DNA of 64,000 bases, taken from the sequence record KJ019146.1. The stretch is one strand, 5' to 3'. This document shows, one piece after another, positions 5,101 to 64,000 of the stretch. Made by a program: the position numbers and the translations under genes. Below the pieces are notes generated by a model. That model worked only from the letters and a program-made list of their open reading frames with translations, had not been told where the DNA came from and ran no database searches. The stretch's first letter is position 1. Each line of letters begins with the position of its first letter.

Positions 5101-8100
5101 GTATGGAACTTTCGGTTCTGTTGTTGGTGGTCTATCTACTGAGAAGCAATACTATGTTGATGCTTTAGATGAAAATATCATCAAACTATCTGATGCCGGT
5201 ATTGGTGGAACAAGTAGGTTTGACTATGATAGGAAGGACTATGTTGATTTCACCAACATTGGTGTTGGAACACAGTTTATCAAGTATCCTGATGTCACTG
5301 TCAATGTTGTAGTATCCTATGCCTCGTCTATCACTGGTATTATTACAGCAACACCTATTATCCGCGGTGGTATTATTCAAACTTATGTTGAGACTGGAGG
5401 ATACTATGGTTCTGATATTCTCAACTTCGCCAAGACACCAGAAGTAACAGTTCAGACTGGTGAAGGTGCTAGAATCAAACCAGTTATTGTTAATGGTAAG
5501 GTTACCACAGTTCAGATTCTAAGTAAGGGTATCAACTACCCACCCACACCAGATCTTCGTGTTATTGATAAGTCTCGTAAAGGTGCTGGTGCTCTTCTTC
5601 GCCCAGTAGTTATTGATGGTGCTATCCAGAGTGTTGTTGTTATTAGCACTGGTGAAAACTATGATCCATTGAATACTGATATTACAGTAATTGATACTGC
5701 TAGACGATGTATTCTTGTTCCTAGAATTACACCTCTCACAGTTAATACCTTTGCTAGATTTGGATTCGAAGGTCTATCTAATAATGACTACTCGGTTGTT
5801 GCCTATGACAGAAAGATTCGTGAGGATGTATATGGTGACCTAGGTGCTTCCCACTCACCCATCATTGGTTGGGCAAACGATGGTAACCCCATCTATGGTG
5901 GTTTTGGTTTCGATGATCCAGAGAACTCCAGTTCTGGTTTCCGGGCGATGAGAACTTCCTATGAACTCTTCCCTGGTGAGATCTATGGTCGTCCCCCACT
6001 AACACTATATCCTGCTGGTTCTTTTGTTGAGGACTACAAGTTTACAGATAATGGTGATCTAGACATCTATAATGGTAGGTATGGTAGAACTCCTGAGTAC
6101 CCTAATGGTGTGTATGCATACTTCGCTGGCATCTCCACTGATACTCAGTCACTAGCAAGAGAACCACAATTCCCTTACTTCATTGGTCCTGAGTTTAGGG
6201 ATGGATTGGGTATTCAAGATAATACTGTATCCCAAGATTTTGATATTAATAATAAGGATATTTTCCGTAATACTTTCCCATATGCCGTAGGTAACCCTAT
6301 TATCGGCAGTGAGTTCCTAGATCAATCATACTTAGAGGATACTCAGGATTCTATTATACAATCTATCAATAATGGTACTGTTGATAACTTAACCATCGTT
6401 GGTGCTGGTGTTAGTTACTCTGTTGGTGATATTGTTAATTTTGATGATACTTTCGACTACATTAGTGTAGTTGTAGATCAGGTAGATGGTCCCGAGGTAA
6501 CACAGATTCAAACTCTCATCAAGAGTTATGGTAAAGCAGAAACCAAAGTCATTAAAGTTGATAACACAACTGTTCGTGTTTATGTTGATCCCTTCCACGA
6601 GTATCTTGATGGAGATAAAGTTGTAATTAGTGGTCTATCAACAAACACAGATCAACTCAACGGGACTCATGAGATTAACTTCATGAGGGAGCAAATGACA
6701 ATGTTTGCTCCTATTCCTCCTACTTTGTTTGAGACAGTATCTGATATCTTTGTCAATACTATTTCAGATAAGGTTTCTGTTGGTTCTAGTATTGCTGTTG
6801 GTCTTGGCACTCTATCGGAGGATATGGAAGTTATTAACATCTTCCCTATTAATAAGGCACTTCGGGTTAAGAGACCAGTAGGTTATGGTTTCACACACCC
6901 AATTGGTGATGCTGTTAACATTGCTCCTAATTACTTTGATATTAAGAAGAATGTAGATTCATTCCCGTCTGAGATTGATGTTGAGTACTACTTCAACCCA
7001 CACCAAACAGTGGCAGTTGGATTGGAGACTGGTGTAAGTGTTGGTTTGGTGTATTCAATTGGTACTATCGATAAGAATATCTCAGTACAGACTCAAAGAA
7101 TATATGCACCATCCCATGGTTTCAGAACTGGTGAGGAGATTACTTTTGAGAAGAATGATACTGATACTGCATTAGTTGTAACAGACGGTAGTACTGTATA
7201 TACACTACCTGGTGTAGGTAATACAAGTAACGCATATGTTGTATCACTATCCAAGAACTATATTGGTATTAGAACAGTAACAGATGGTCCTGATCTATTC
7301 TTCTCTACTGATGGTTCCGATTCTCCTCTATATTCTATTAAGACTAATCGTTTCGCTGAGACTGCATTAGTAGATAGAATTCAGGCAGAAGTTAAAACGA
7401 AAACGGATCATAGGTTGGGGAATGACGATCAGATATTTACTGATGTTATTTCTTCTGGAAAATCAGGTGTAGGTACTAACCCCAACATCAAACTTGAGTT
7501 CGATGATTCATCACAATCACTTATTGTAGATCCATACTTCACACAACCTAGTGATATTGATACGGTTAATAACCTAATTAATATCAATAACCACGGTTAT
7601 ACTAATGGGGATATTGTTCTATATCAAAACTATGGAAGTTCTATTGGTGGTTTAACAACTCATCACAAATATTACACTATTCCCTTTGATAGGGATAAGT
7701 TCTATGTTGCTGAAACATTTGTTGATGTAAGACCCGGAACTAAACTACCTGTGAATCTAACTTCTGTTGGTATTGGTTCCCATAAGTTCTCCAAGGTCAA
7801 TCCACCACTACTCATCACTAATAATAATGATATTGAGTTTGATGTGTCATCACCAACTCTATTTGGTAAAACACTAGAATTCTTCTTTGATCGGACTCTA
7901 ACTGAAATATTTGATAATAACAGTATAGACAATGTATTTGTTGTTTCTGGTGTATCTACTGAGGGATACGAGGATGCTAGGAAGTCTATTAGATACTCTG
8001 ATAACAATCCAGATGTATTCTTCTATGGTATTACTGAAGGTGGTTATATTTCCACTGCAGATACTGAAGTATCTAGAAACAACTCTATTAGATATGAGGC

Positions 8101-59554: not shown

Positions 59555-59941
59555 ATGAACAATGATTATGATAGGGAACTTCCTTCCCCAACCGGATCTA
59601 CGGGGGCAGTTGAACTAATGATTGAATCTATTGACTTGATGAGCAACAATGATCCAGTAGTAAAACTAGTTCTACTGAAGAATAATGAAACTATTATTGC
59701 TGAGGTTCGTGAGAGTATCGATGGAAGTAGTGTTCAGCTCATTGATCCTCGTGTAGTTCTACTACAGGCAGCAAGACCATCTGATGACGGACAGACTACA
59801 ACAACTGCCATCTCATATACCGACTGGTTACCTTTGTCTGGGAGTAGAAACTTCACTATTGCTGGTGATTATGTGGTCCTTATCACTGATCCCATTGAAA
59901 GTTTAGTACAAAGTTATACACAGGCACGACAAAATGGATGA
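59555..59941 (+). CDS. Sm-like fold protein (paralog 3)
   Basis: VKLVLLKNNETIIAEV...VQLIDP...YTDWLP pattern. Confidence 0.6.
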   Translation: MNNDYDRELPSPTGSTGAVELMIESIDLMSNNDPVVKLVLLKNNETIIAEVRESIDGSSVQLIDPRVVLLQAARPSDDGQTTTTAISYTDWLPLSGSRNFTIAGDYVVLITDPIESLVQSYTQARQNG

Positions 59942-60215
59942 AACTATTAGAGTATTGGTCTTGACCAATGGAAAAGTCCTTATCAGTAAGATCGAAGAGA
60001 TAGGAGGTGCTGATATCGGGGAGCCAGACTGCCGTCTAACCGACCCAGTATGGTATAATGATGAGGTGGAGGAAATGACTGAAGGGTTCAAACGCTTTCC
60101 TGGTAAGGGGATCACACCCGATACCAAGTTGGCCATCTCTTCTGTCAATATCTTGACTCTGGTTACCCCAGATAATAAACTCCTCAGTGAATACCTCGTG
60201 TTTATTAGTGATTAA
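59934..60215 (+). CDS. Sm-like fold protein (paralog 4)
   Basis: IRVLVLTNGKVLISKIEE...CRLTDP pattern; coupled to gp43A. Confidence 0.6.
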   Translation: MDETIRVLVLTNGKVLISKIEEIGGADIGEPDCRLTDPVWYNDEVEEMTEGFKRFPGKGITPDTKLAISSVNILTLVTPDNKLLSEYLVFISD

Positions 60216-61690
60216 TGTCTAACAAGTTCTACACCAATGTTCAGCTTTATGGTAACAACATCCTCCTACGCGGGTATGAGAACGGAGAGAAGTTCCACAC
60301 TAGGGAACAATACTCTCCTACACTATATGTGAGTTCCAAGAAACCCGGTAAGTGGAAAACACTTACTGGTGAGAATGTTCAACCAGTGAAACCTGGATCT
60401 ATTAGAGATTGTAGGGATTTCATCAAGAAGTATAAAGATGTAGAGAACTTTAAGGTGTTTGGTAACGAGAGGTTTGCCTTTCAATACATTGCAGACAACT
60501 ATCCTGGGGAGATTGAATATGATCCCCAGTTGATTAATATCCTAAGTTTGGATATTGAGGTTGAGTCTGAACATGGTTTCCCAGATCCAGAGTCTGCTAA
60601 TGAGGAAGTACTTCTCATTACTATTCAGGACTATGTTACCAAACAAATCATTACTTGGGGTCAGATAAAGCATGGGGAGTTTGATAACCAACAGGATAAT
60701 GTAGATTTCCGTCCCTGTGAGAGTGAGTATCACCTACTGAGTGCCTTTATTCAGTGGTGGCAACAGAACCCACCTGATGTTATCACTGGGTGGAACATTG
60801 ACTATTATGATATTCCATACCTCGTCAGACGCATGAAGAGAGTGTTGGGTGATAAACTAGCAAGCACTATCTCCCCTTGGAAGTTCGTAACGGACGAAGA
60901 GCACTTCTTCAAGGGTATGAATAAACTATATTATAATATCGCTGGTATCACCCAACTAGACTACCTAGTTTTATACACTAAGTTCACATATACGAACCAA
61001 GAGTCATACAGACTAGACCACATTGCTAATGTGGAGTTGGGTCAGCAGAAGTTAGACCACTCTGAGTTTGAAACTTTCAAAGACTTCTACCGAAAAGGTT
61101 GGCAGAAGTTCGTAGAATATAACATCGTTGACGTGGAACTGGTTGACAGGATGGAAGAGAAGTTGAAACTCATTGACCTTGCCATCACCATGGCGTTCGA
61201 TGCCAAGGTTAACTTCCAGGATGTATTCTCACAGGTGAGACTATGGGATACTATTATCTACAACTATCTCAGAGATAGAAACATTGTTATCCCCCAGAAG
61301 GAACAGACTAGTAAGAGTGAGAAGTTCGCTGGAGCATATGTAAAAGAACCCAAACCCGGTCTATATGAATGGGTGGTGTCCTTTGACCTTAACTCCCTGT
61401 ATCCTCACCTACTAATGCAATACAACATCTCTCCAGAAACATTGATGGAAGAGAGGTGTCCTAATATCTCCATTGAAAAGGTTCTCAATGAAGAAGTAAC
61501 CTTTGAGATGTATAAAGACTATGCTGTTTGTCCTAATGGGGCAATGTATCGCAAAGATGTCCGCGGGTTCCTACCAACCCTAATGGAAAAGATGTATGAT
61601 GAACGAAAGGCGTTCAAACAAAAGATGTTGAAGTCCAAACAAATCCTCGTTGATATCGAGGCTGAAATGAAAAAAAGAGGTGTATTATGA
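60215..61690 (+). CDS. gp43: DNA polymerase B, N-terminal half (gp43A): exonuclease, motif A and first finger helix
   Basis: ExoI SLDIEVES, ExoII GWNIDYYDIPY, ExoIII YNIVDVELV, motif A SFDLNSLYP; ends RKAFKQKMLKSKQILVDIEAEMKKRGVL*. Confidence 0.95.
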   Translation: MSNKFYTNVQLYGNNILLRGYENGEKFHTREQYSPTLYVSSKKPGKWKTLTGENVQPVKPGSIRDCRDFIKKYKDVENFKVFGNERFAFQYIADNYPGEIEYDPQLINILSLDIEVESEHGFPDPESANEEVLLITIQDYVTKQIITWGQIKHGEFDNQQDNVDFRPCESEYHLLSAFIQWWQQNPPDVITGWNIDYYDIPYLVRRMKRVLGDKLASTISPWKFVTDEEHFFKGMNKLYYNIAGITQLDYLVLYTKFTYTNQESYRLDHIANVELGQQKLDHSEFETFKDFYRKGWQKFVEYNIVDVELVDRMEEKLKLIDLAITMAFDAKVNFQDVFSQVRLWDTIIYNYLRDRNIVIPQKEQTSKSEKFAGAYVKEPKPGLYEWVVSFDLNSLYPHLLMQYNISPETLMEERCPNISIEKVLNEEVTFEMYKDYAVCPNGAMYRKDVRGFLPTLMEKMYDERKAFKQKMLKSKQILVDIEAEMKKRGVL

Positions 61691-61845
61691 GTTTTCGTCA
61701 CAAAACATATGGTGGTCTAGTTCATTATGACCACAATGATAAGATTATCGTCATTGAACGTCGATTGAATCCAATGCAACATCACGCTATGCTTGTGAGT
61801 AAGTTGAAGGAAGAGTATCCAGAGTATCAAGTAGTTACTGGATAG
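61687..61845 (+). CDS. 52-aa hypothetical protein inside the split gp43 locus (not in ORF track)
   Basis: Hand translation MSFRHKTYGGLVHYDHNDKIIVIERRLNPMQHHAMLVSKLKEEYPEYQVVTG*; ATGA overlap with the gp43A stop; GAGGTG Shine-Dalgarno. Confidence 0.7.
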   Translation: MSFRHKTYGGLVHYDHNDKIIVIERRLNPMQHHAMLVSKLKEEYPEYQVVTG

Positions 61846-62060
61846 TGAGTGGTTTAGTTGCTGAGATTATGCAAGTCGTTACTATGATTACTATGCTATT
61901 CAATATGTGTAATAGTAATGAGTTCAACAGACAAGCATGTATGAAAGACTGGGATACTTGGTTATTACCTGAGATATCCCGTGCGTGGCAAATTAAAACA
62001 GGTCAGGAAGCCCCTTACCAAAACGAGGAAGATGTGGTAGAATGGCACCAACAGCAGTGA
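61845..62060 (+). CDS. 71-aa hypothetical protein with hydrophobic N-terminus inside the split gp43 locus
   Basis: GTG start overlaps the upstream TAG; LVAEIMQVVTMITMLF segment then C..N.FNR.AC. Confidence 0.65.
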   Translation: MSGLVAEIMQVVTMITMLFNMCNSNEFNRQACMKDWDTWLLPEISRAWQIKTGQEAPYQNEEDVVEWHQQQ

Positions 62061-62067
62061 GGTTCTT

Positions 62068-63231
62068 ATTGGCTATTTGATCGGCGGTGCGGGTGAAGGA
62101 CCTGATGAGGAGATCATTCAGTCGGATAGTGACTACTCCAAACTATCTGATAAACAACTGATCTACCTACGTGGGCAAACTATTAAAGATATTGCGAAGT
62201 ATCATAACTTCCAACAGGTGAGAAAGATTACCCTAAACTCCGCTTATGGTGCCCTAGGTAATCAATACTTTAGATACTATAAACTGGCGAACGCAGAGGC
62301 AGTGACCTTCTCTGGTCAGTTAAGTATCCGTTGGATTGAGAATAAGATGAATGGATTCATCAATGAGATTCTAAAAACAGAGGGTAAGGATTATGTGATC
62401 GCCTCTGATACTGACTCTATCTACATTAACTTTGGTGATGTGGTAGATAAGTTCTTGAAGAAGTTTGATGGTGATAAGGAGAAGACTGTATCAATGGTAG
62501 ATAAGATCTGTAAGGATCAACTAGAACCATTCATTGATAAGTGTTATGCCCATTTGGGTGAGTATGTGAATGCATACGAACAGAAGATGCAGATGAAGAG
62601 AGAGAATATTGCTGATCGTGGTATCTGGACAGCGAAGAAGAGATATATCCTGAATGTATGGGATAGTGAGGGTGTTCGTTATGAGGAACCCAAACTGAAG
62701 ATGATGGGCATCGAAGCAGTGAAGTCCTCCACACCTGCTCCCTGTAGAACTATGATTAAGGATGCTCTCCGTATTATCATTGAGAAATCTGAGGATGAAG
62801 TTATTGACTACATTGATGATTGTAGAAAGAAGTTTAAACAGATGAAACCAGAGGAGATTGCGTTTCCTCGTTCTGTGAGTGATATGATCAAGTTTCGTTC
62901 TGGGACAACAATATATGCTAAGAGTACTCCTATGCATGTGAGGGGGGCGTTACTATTCAATCATCACATTAAGAAGGGTGGGTTGGAGAACAAGTATTCT
63001 CTCATCAATAGTGGTGAGAAGATCAAGTTCTGCTACCTCAAGATTCCTAATCTAATTGGTGAGAATGTTATCTCATTCATCTCCGACTTTCCTAGGGAAC
63101 TTAAGTTGGAGAAGTATGTTGATTATGATACCCAATTCAATAAAGCATTCCTAGATCCACTCAAGATCATCTTGGATGCTATTGGTTGGAACTGTGAGAA
63201 ACAGATGTCTTTGGAATCATTTTTCACCTGA
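62068..63231 (+). CDS. gp43: DNA polymerase B, C-terminal half (gp43B): second finger helix, palm, thumb and clamp-binding tail
   Basis: Motif B KITLNSAYGALGN, motif C ASDTDSIY, KKRY, C-terminal QMSLESFF. Start is ATT 62068 (after GAGG) or TTG 62077. Confidence 0.93.
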   Translation: MGYLIGGAGEGPDEEIIQSDSDYSKLSDKQLIYLRGQTIKDIAKYHNFQQVRKITLNSAYGALGNQYFRYYKLANAEAVTFSGQLSIRWIENKMNGFINEILKTEGKDYVIASDTDSIYINFGDVVDKFLKKFDGDKEKTVSMVDKICKDQLEPFIDKCYAHLGEYVNAYEQKMQMKRENIADRGIWTAKKRYILNVWDSEGVRYEEPKLKMMGIEAVKSSTPAPCRTMIKDALRIIIEKSEDEVIDYIDDCRKKFKQMKPEEIAFPRSVSDMIKFRSGTTIYAKSTPMHVRGALLFNHHIKKGGLENKYSLINSGEKIKFCYLKIPNLIGENVISFISDFPRELKLEKYVDYDTQFNKAFLDPLKIILDAIGWNCEKQMSLESFFT

Positions 63232-63259
63232 TATATAAAACCCCCAGAGGAGATCACCA

Positions 63260-63418
63260 ATGGAAAAACAAAATCTAGCGATGGATCTATTCATCGAGTC
63301 TGTAATCAAACCAGACAGTGACCTTAGGGGTCAAGCATCAGAACAGGGTTGTCTAGAAGAACTATTGCAAATCCGTGATGATGTGATAAAATATCTTTAT
63401 AACGAGAGGAAAAACTAG
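63260..63418 (+). CDS. 52-aa hypothetical protein (not in ORF track)
   Basis: Hand translation MEKQNLAMDLFIESVIKPDSDLRGQASEQGCLEELLQIRDDVIKYLYNERKN*; GAGGAG Shine-Dalgarno upstream. Confidence 0.7.
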   Translation: MEKQNLAMDLFIESVIKPDSDLRGQASEQGCLEELLQIRDDVIKYLYNERKN

Positions 63419-63421
63419 TTT

Positions 63422-63655
63422 ATGGCGTTATCCCAATCAGTGGAGAATTCCCTCAGGGAGGCAAGTTCGTCCCTGAGGAATGCTCTAGCTTTTGCTGCCA
63501 GACAGGAGAGATCACATACCTGTCAGCATATTGCTAAAGTATTAAACGATATTGATCTTATTCAGAGAACGGATGAGATGTTTGATACCCTTGATAGTAT
63601 CAAGGATGGTAAGGGTGGTAGCAACCCATTTGGTAAATTTGGTTTTGATGAATAA
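63422..63655 (+). CDS. Small helical hypothetical protein
   Basis: 77 aa; MALSQSVENSL.EA...LRNALAFAARQE; stop overlaps the uvsX start. Confidence 0.7.
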   Translation: MALSQSVENSLREASSSLRNALAFAARQERSHTCQHIAKVLNDIDLIQRTDEMFDTLDSIKDGKGGSNPFGKFGFDE

Positions 63656-64000
63656 TGGATTTCTTAAAGGATATTGTAAATGAAATTGGTGGCGACTTCA
63701 CTCAGATTGCCTCAGAGATTGAAGAAAACGAAACATACGTGGACACTGGTTCGTTCATCTTTAATGCTCTTGTATCTGGGTCTATCTATGGTGGTGTATC
63801 TGGTAACAAGATTACTGCAATTGCTGGGGAAAGTTCTACTGGAAAGACTTTCTTCTCACTCGCCGTGGTCAAGAACTTCTTGGATACTAATCCCGATGCA
63901 TATTGCCTTTATTTTGATACTGAAGCTGCAATCAATAGAAACCTTCTTGAGTCACGAGGTATTGACCTTAAGCGGTTGGTTGTCGTCAATGTCGTTACAG
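63655..64000 (+). CDS. uvsX: UvsX RecA-like recombinase, N-terminal part (truncated by window end)
   Basis: Hand translation MDFLKDIV...DTGSFIFNALVSGSIYGG..NKITAIAGESSTGKTFFSL...LYFDTEAA with Walker A. Confidence 0.95.
   Translation, partial: MDFLKDIVNEIGGDFTQIASEIEENETYVDTGSFIFNALVSGSIYGGVSGNKITAIAGESSTGKTFFSLAVVKNFLDTNPDAYCLYFDTEAAINRNLLESRGIDLKRLVVVNVVT

Follow-up and report, generated by a model that had tools for sequence, protein, structure and literature searches.

A T4-like cyanophage DNA polymerase gene in two cistrons, cut at the finger tip, with two small genes at the junction

The division of gene 43, encoding the DNA polymerase (gp43) of T4-related phages, into cistrons 43A and 43B was reportedly described by Petrov, Ratnayaka and Karam in 2010 for the Aeromonas salmonicida phages 44RR2.8t and 25. 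In archaea, the family-B DNA polymerase (PolB) of Methanothermobacter thermautotrophicus is split in two unlinked genes. The two halves of the polymerase of phage 25, a close relative of 44RR2.8t, are reported to co-purify and to be active as a polymerase, and a seg-type endonuclease gene lies between them (PMC2988022, a review of T4 mobile elements). The same review covers nrdA of phage Aeh1, split by mobE, and the T4 topoisomerase genes 60 and 39, split by mobA, and marine metagenomes contain phage-like 'fractured genes' with split inteins, whose halves flank an endonuclease (Dassa et al. 2009, PMC2677866). Here, the polymerase gene of a cyanophage was analyzed in a stretch of 64,000 nucleotides (nt) from record KJ019146.1 (hereafter the window), whose 3-kb polymerase region is 100% identical to Synechococcus phage ACG-2014f isolate Syn7803C16 (KJ019146; Kyanoviridae, Atlauavirus). 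An original prediction, made from the letters alone, had proposed a PolB in two pieces split at the finger tip, and alignment indeed revealed two cistrons with the cut in the finger-tip loop. The explanation that we consider highly probable is a genuine two-cistron PolB (gp43A and gp43B), with two small open reading frames (ORF1 and ORF2) as passengers of the junction. Direct support for it comes from the anatomy of the locus, its conservation and purifying selection, the distribution of the split, the lack of any intron or intein in the scans performed, and a positional match to the 44RR split. The features of the locus are as follows.

60215..61690, + strand: gp43A, 491 amino acids (aa), 58.2 kDa calculated, ending ...EAEMKKRGVL before the stop; GenBank AIX42383.1, 'gp43 DNA polymerase'
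60551, + strand: Exo I, in gp43A
60794, + strand: Exo II, in gp43A
within gp43A, + strand: Exo III, YNIVDVELV, read off the translation
61385-61405, + strand: motif A, DLNSLYP, in gp43A
61676..61682, + strand: Shine-Dalgarno-like AGAGGTG, within the last gp43A codons (KKRG), 4 nt 5' of the ORF1 ATG
61687..61845, + strand: ORF1, 52 aa, 6.2 kDa, isoelectric point (pI) 8.1; its ATG overlaps the gp43A stop (ATGA)
61845..62060, + strand: ORF2, 71 aa, 8.4 kDa, pI 4.4; its GTG start overlaps the TAG of ORF1 (TAGTG)
62058..62070, + strand: candidate coupling junction TGAGGTTCTTATT, with the ORF2 TGA at 62058-62060, GAGG at 62059-62062, a 5-nt spacer and ATT at 62068-62070
62068..63231, + strand: gp43B, 387 aa, 44.7 kDa calculated, tail ...SLESFFT
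62224-62250, + strand: motif B, KITLNSAYG, in gp43B, 52 residues in
62407-62418, + strand: motif C, DTDS, in gp43B

The gp43A stop is the TGA at 61688-61690, after the first finger helix as had been predicted, a placement on which the ORF list, the sequence and the alignment with RB69 agree. gp43A comprises the N-terminal domain, the 3'-5' exonuclease, the initial portion of the palm, which includes motif A, and the first finger helix; gp43B comprises the head of the finger tip, the second finger helix with motif B, the remaining palm with motif C, the thumb and the C-terminal tail. Between them the two proteins keep the full set of exonuclease and polymerase motifs, and Pfam assigned DNA_pol_B_exo1 and the start of DNA_pol_B to gp43A and the remainder of DNA_pol_B to gp43B. 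The best solved relatives of both halves were RB69 and T4 gp43 (E 1e-66 to 1e-79), against whose structures gp43A aligned to about residue 490 and gp43B from about residue 550. In the multiple alignment the break falls at RB69 residue ~509, within the loop that joins the two helices of the fingers. Together, the end of gp43A and the start of gp43B run collinear with the long finger tip of RB69, with no extra domain. The downstream polymerase frame, which differs from that of gp43A according to the ORF list and the sequence, is open over 62041-63231. The gap of about 377-378 nt between the halves is coding, being occupied by ORF1 and ORF2, both intact and with the lengths and ATGA and TAGTG overlaps given in the original prediction.

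The Aeromonas splits in the fingers, which had been invoked as a precedent, proved apt: in 44RR2.8t, where 43A (498 aa, ending ...ASRGVKLDH) and 43B (391 aa) are 49 nt apart, the cut aligns to RB69 ~513, four residues from that of the window. The cyanophage locus shares with 44RR2.8t and 25 a T4-family PolB and the same replication neighbourhood, adjoining regA and the clamp loader, and with 44RR2.8t two cistrons near-equal in size (498 + 391 aa there, 491 + 387 aa here) and a similar gp43A tail (...ASRGVKLDH against ...KKRGVL). Unlike 44RR, which has a 49-nt untranslated spacer and an ATG for 43B, the window has two non-endonuclease ORFs and an ATT at the corresponding start. Phage 25 resembles in turn three marine loci (L019, L020 and L098; L-numbers denote the loci compared) in having a free-standing homing endonuclease gene between the halves. 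By sequence, the window is a member, from a distant lineage, of the Aeromonas-type gp43A/gp43B kind of split. As 44RR belongs to the Straboviridae and the window to the Kyanoviridae, with many unsplit gp43 between them, the Aeromonas and cyanophage splits probably arose independently, at the same structural weak point. Like nrdA of Aeh1 and genes 60/39 of T4, this is an essential enzyme gene in two cistrons at a site tolerant of breakage, whose products would likewise reassemble and whose junction is tied to mobile endonuclease genes in some family members; unlike those cases, the window is without an endonuclease and the split allele persists free of inserts in many relatives. The archaeal and the split-intein cases are alike in that a PolB or another replication enzyme is encoded by two genes, but the archaeal split lies at another place and its genes are unlinked. 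No intein (Hint) blocks were detected by Pfam in gp43A or gp43B, which matched polymerase domains only. A split-intein fractured gene was rejected on this basis and on the collinearity of tail and head with the RB69 finger tip; since no intein halves flank the cut, protein trans-splicing is not expected.

That broken essential genes are often errors is the only argument, and a prior one, for regarding the split as an assembly or sequencing artefact, or as the decaying pseudogene of a defective genome. Against it, all 45 GenBank genomes of ACG-2014f, separately assembled isolates with 92-100% identity, have the same layout and are each annotated with two DNA polymerase coding sequences (CDSs). 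Cultured members of two further phage genera show this layout too, as do contigs of independent metagenomic origin, by sample as well as by source (ENA, JGI/IMG-VR, Logan); the catalytic motifs are all intact, and strong purifying selection acts on either side of the cut. An artefact or a pseudogene is accordingly next to inconceivable, and the claim of the original prediction that no sequencing error is involved stands.

The restart of the polymerase had been placed near 62068. That position was upheld, as the conserved first codon of gp43B, but the codon is ATT, and the conserved N-terminus in the window contains no ATG, no GTG and no conserved TTG. The aligned codon is ATG in L006, L014, L011 and L017, ATC in L007, L009, L019, L100 and L102, and ATT in the window, L020 and L101 (L100-L102 being ACG-2014f isolates); by accession, it is ATT in KJ019148 and ATC in KJ019155 and KJ019059. 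The Gly-Tyr-Leu-Ile codons that follow ATT, ATC or ATG differ among loci only synonymously, the ratio of nonsynonymous to synonymous substitution rates (dN/dS) over the first 56 codons of gp43B is 0.015-0.24, and L007 and L009 have an in-frame stop, TGA, two codons ahead of ATC. Because of these three observations translation would begin at the ATH codon, and we infer that gp43B starts at the ATT at 62068 in the window and at ATC or ATG in relatives. The TTG three codons after ATT, which GenBank uses as the start in the window, is CTT or CTG in relatives. A GAGG is found 4-5 nt upstream of the ATH codon, overlapping the ORF2 stop, and this arrangement of GAGG and ATT suggests coupled termination-reinitiation of gp43B.

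A similar logic is apparent along the whole junction. Where relatives have a bare split, the final codons of gp43A, KKRG (AAG AAG AGG GGA), precede the overlapping ATG of gp43B and can be read as its Shine-Dalgarno sequence. Inserts begin at the gp43A-end site (ATGA or AATGA) and end with a GGAGG-type sequence of their own and a stop/start junction. Since each insert starts at the original site and brings its own 3' Shine-Dalgarno and stop/start junction, coupling would be preserved. In line with the co-translation with the polymerase halves that had been predicted, the overlaps indicate that the small ORFs are arranged for coupled translation. Escherichia coli infC and pcnB are AUU-initiated genes, and gp43B is like them in having a conserved non-AUG (AUU) start behind a Shine-Dalgarno sequence. 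Unlike in infC and pcnB, AUU or AUC occurs in the phages only where another ORF ends just upstream, bare-split relatives using ATG, which points to re-initiation coupling and not to autoregulation based on initiation factor 3.

With no canonical start at the conserved N-terminus, automated annotation of gp43B is unreliable: in GenBank, four ACG-2014f isolates carry four different gp43B starts, an upstream GTG or far-downstream GTG or TTG among them, and two truncate the second finger helix. The positions concerned are as follows.

window: 62068-62079, with the annotated TTG at 62077
L100: 763
L101: 874
L102: 955

The missing canonical start codon is also one of the observations that would favor removal or skipping of the gap, so that a single full-length gp43 is made, whether by a group I or II intron, by bypassing as in T4 gene 60, or by readthrough or frameshifting that fuses ORF2 to gp43B. 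In addition, ORF2 and gp43B share a frame in L007 and L009, and phage polymerase genes are known to hold introns, phage 25 having one in 43B (PMC2988022). Unlike in phage 25, none was found here. The Rfam scan of 60000-64000 at E ≤ 10 gave no match there, apart from a chance match elsewhere, the scan of the split region of 10 related loci at E ≤ 1 gave none, and the RNA fold was no better than that of shuffled sequence (z -0.57). The insert is filled by two selected ORFs, leaving no room for a ribozyme core. A group I intron was consequently rejected, neither a conserved ribozyme core nor a stable fold having been found.

The other two routes to a single product fared no better. The insert can be as long as ~740 nt or absent altogether, the bare form being no more than the direct stop/start overlap TAATG. 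Bypassing was rejected because the ~377-nt gap is coding and the last codons of gp43A vary among relatives (GVL, GLQ, NLV, GIK); moreover, the gp43B frame offers no matching pair of take-off and landing codons, and the sole TTA close to the restart (62066-62068) lies in a frame other than that of gp43B. Readthrough or frameshifting was rejected because neither the frames nor the terminal codons are conserved: relatives differ in the frame of ORF2 relative to gp43B, and in L009 three stops in the ORF2 frame separate the two genes. Combined, these data make a full-length gp43 a very slim prospect.

The distribution of the split was surveyed next to that of its cargo. The same cut, with gp43A ending ...EEMKRRGL, and one ORF2 homologue are present in the cultured phages S-N03/S-H34 and MA10/MA01/ME01/MC09, which belong to two other genera. 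A search with gp43B, restricted by design to proteins of similar length, gave thousands of matches; the best 120 clusters, those examined, were all of 337-392 aa, 116 of the 120 having 384-392 aa at 99-100% coverage, and clusters of gp43B length lie on contigs of up to 191 kb. The finger-tip cut thus occurs in more than 100 metagenomic protein clusters. Among 80 IMG/VR loci, a sample biased toward relatives of the query, 10 were split at the finger tip, 5 were split elsewhere, upstream of the fingers, 62 were unsplit and 3 were incomplete. What lies between gp43A and gp43B differs among finger-tip-split loci.

L014-16, L023-27: no cargo, gp43A stop and gp43B start overlapping as TAATG
L011-13: one ORF, of family X (phrog_2067)
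L017: a 78-aa ORF and family X
L021: ORF1 and family X
window, L006, L009: ORF1 and ORF2
L007: family X, ORF1 and ORF2
L019 (346-1056): free-standing homing endonuclease, DUF559/Vsr-like
L020 (1860-2315), L022: free-standing homing endonuclease, HNH, phrog_374
L098 (2828-3502): free-standing homing endonuclease, phrog_655

Three endonuclease families therefore sit exactly at the finger-tip junction in relatives (L019, L020 and L098), and in the window no homing endonuclease of HNH, GIY-YIG or Vsr type was detected between the halves by Pfam, PHROGs or PADLOC. The view of the split site as a landing pad gained from this survey, as the same junction holds 0, 1, 2 or 3 small ORFs or a homing endonuclease in relatives. 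The arrangement is natural, common and of a known kind. Its being already common had been named beforehand as something that would lower its novelty, and it is indeed frequent among marine phages, with two CDSs already annotated in GenBank. A search of the accessible literature found no paper describing the split of cyanophage gp43; the paper on S-N03 placed its 'DNA polymerase' in a tree without mention of a split.

ORF1 belongs to phrog_3538 and ORF2 to phrog_3571 and phrog_703 in PHROGs, all three families of unknown function, and Pfam, PHROGs and PADLOC matched both ORFs only to function-unknown families and to no endonuclease. Pairwise dN/dS was 0.17-0.23 for ORF1 in diverged pairs, reaching 0.87 in the closest pair, and 0.11-0.44 for ORF2; by these sequence comparisons ORF1, ORF2 and the gp43B N-terminus are under purifying selection. 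AlphaFold models of moderate confidence (pLDDT, the predicted local distance difference test, 78 for each) showed a small beta-beta-alpha-beta unit for ORF1 and four helices for ORF2, a hydrophobic N-terminal one followed by three short ones. In Foldseek, ORF2 had no PDB match and ORF1 only chance-level matches (best E 0.035). A degenerate HNH remnant was considered for ORF1 on account of its conserved YDH...N...H and beta-beta-alpha arrangement, and was rejected: L021 does not conserve the His of the helix, and neither an HNH model nor an HNH structure matched.

Only 23 small stand-alone relatives of ORF2 were found by a profile search of 1.84 billion representative proteins. ORF2-family genes lie directly 3' of mazG in ACG-2014i (L104 5908-6105), where gp43 is unsplit, and in L014 (9886-10044), where the split is bare; downstream of mazG appears to be the usual place of these genes in phages with unsplit or bare-split gp43. 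The copy in L014 was uncalled in the source assembly. A further member is present in the unrelated 74-kb phage S-CRES1. The ORF1 homologue of S-N03-type phages, far from the polymerase, overlaps the end of the gene for DNA adenine methylase (Dam; L103, that is S-N03, 1516-1656).

According to the explanation favored here, gp43A and gp43B would most likely assemble non-covalently into one PolB, by analogy with the co-purifying, active halves reported for phage 25; the finger helices, one per half, would pair with each other, and the active site would be composed of motif A from gp43A and motifs B and C from gp43B. The split would represent an old allele of the finger tip, 'long' and 'split', that is widespread among marine cyanomyoviruses; in its simplest state, the TAATG overlap, the KKRG codons would act as the ribosome-binding site of gp43B. 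The junction would be a gene boundary within an essential, highly expressed operon and would gather inserts. In the window, ORF1 would have taken over the original ribosome-binding site through ATGA, with ORF2 coupled via TAGTG, and gp43B would most likely be translated from AUU at 62068, 5 nt past GAGG, by termination-reinitiation.

Several points weigh against this explanation. The case for assembly of gp43A with gp43B in ACG-2014f is an analogy to a distant relative. In those bacteria where their strength has been measured, AUU and AUC initiate weakly, so that equal output of gp43A and gp43B is not assured. KJ019155 has an in-frame GTG two codons upstream of the conserved codon and the window a TTG three codons downstream of ATT, which makes the exact gp43B start of each isolate uncertain. 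Finally, ORF2 is kept at the split junction in three phage genera (Atlauavirus, Huanghaivirus and Makaravirus), and this could mean a role for the split enzyme.

If so, ORF1 and/or ORF2 would be functional partners of the polymerase: small subunits, assembly factors holding the finger helices, or tuners of the enzyme. Purifying selection on both ORFs, their predicted translational coupling inside the polymerase operon and the apparent dependence of gp43B initiation on the ORF2 stop region are consistent with such a role. Yet close relatives (L014-16, L023-27) have the same split with an empty junction, and a polymerase that does without any intervening gene cannot depend on ORF1 or ORF2. Elsewhere the junction carries unrelated cargo (family X, the 78-aa ORF, homing endonucleases), ORF2-family genes occur away from the polymerase, 3' of mazG and in S-CRES1, and the ORF1 homologue of S-N03 adjoins the Dam methylase gene. 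No structural or family match linked ORF1 or ORF2 to any replication protein. Partnership is therefore unlikely, and the idea that the small ORFs are accessory to the replicase found no support: they did not create the split, and bare-split relatives do without them. ORF1 and ORF2 are real genes that probably travel as passengers of the two-cistron polymerase, as judged from the relatives with a bare split, which have neither at the junction.

The history of the finger tip was approached through a polymerase-core tree built without the finger-tip columns. Loci split at the finger tip fell in at least 4-5 places on it, so that no fewer than 4-5 changes are needed, and one common origin for all of them was rejected (one-clade constraint, approximately unbiased test, p 2e-5). 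Sequences of the long split tip (LVDIEAEMKKRG / MGYLIGG...) are homologous to one another, as are those of the short continuous tip (AKQEYEKTPTKALEKE), and neither tip is a simple deletion product of the other. From this we infer that the two tips are alternative alleles swapped by recombination between co-infecting phages, with the endonuclease genes of the junction as a plausible driver of the exchange. An extension of this view, which we hold to be doubtful though worth stating, is that the long split tip is a horizontally exchanged cassette, alternating with the short continuous tip across cyanophage lineages and moved by junction-targeting homing endonucleases, with passengers that became hard to lose once the gp43B ATG, lying behind ORF2 or an endonuclease gene, had eroded to ATT or ATC. 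Retention would follow because gp43B, the essential C-terminal half, could be synthesized solely by ribosomes coming directly from the passenger gene and, if true, this would constitute an 'addiction'-type mechanism keeping small selfish genes within an essential operon.

A fragmented replicative polymerase is a common and stable state in abundant ocean cyanophages and not an oddity of a few Aeromonas phages. gp43 is in use as a phylogenetic and PCR marker, and there is a practical effect on this use, given that gene callers truncate or misplace gp43B and that GenBank starts differ within one species. Bare splits, small ORFs, homing endonucleases and the unsplit allele form a natural series at one site, in which it can be asked how essential genes break, what keeps the fragments co-expressed, and how gene boundaries are colonized by small genes and endonucleases. 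An essential gene with a conserved AUU/AUC start also provides a case in which obligate translational coupling can be tested. Value for follow-up thus lies in the variable cargo, endonuclease occupancy, the patchy distribution of the alleles and the non-AUG start of gp43B.

A second type of split was observed in five cyanophage-like IMG/VR contigs (L032, L043, L051, L053 and L064) and rejected as the same phenomenon because its site differs, being upstream of the fingers. There, the gp43A part ends ...ELEKML and the B part, of ~450 aa, starts MSNDMWKDVRK.... Some of these loci have an empty spacer of 153 nt, L032 has an HNH gene and L053 a GIY-YIG gene. The coordinates of this second site are as follows.

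L032: 2586-3159
L043: 3029-3189
L053: 1521-2084
L064: 2060-2604

The genes around the split polymerase of the window follow the order of a T4-like replication module: gp44, nrdC, gp62, regA, hsp20, two DUF6561 ORFs, polymerase, two small ORFs, uvsX and gp41. A promoter and terminator scan gave counts no higher than those of shuffled sequence. The two adjacent, paralogous DUF6561-type ORFs (phrog_431 and phrog_483; 59555-59941 and 59934-60215) lie directly 5' of gp43A and are kept in all related loci examined. At the boundary between gp43B and uvsX, the window has two small ORFs (63260-63418 and 63422-63655). This boundary is also variable: L014 contains a 188-aa ORF with a NUMOD3 motif (6168-6734), and L011 a fatty-acid desaturase gene (6157-6939).

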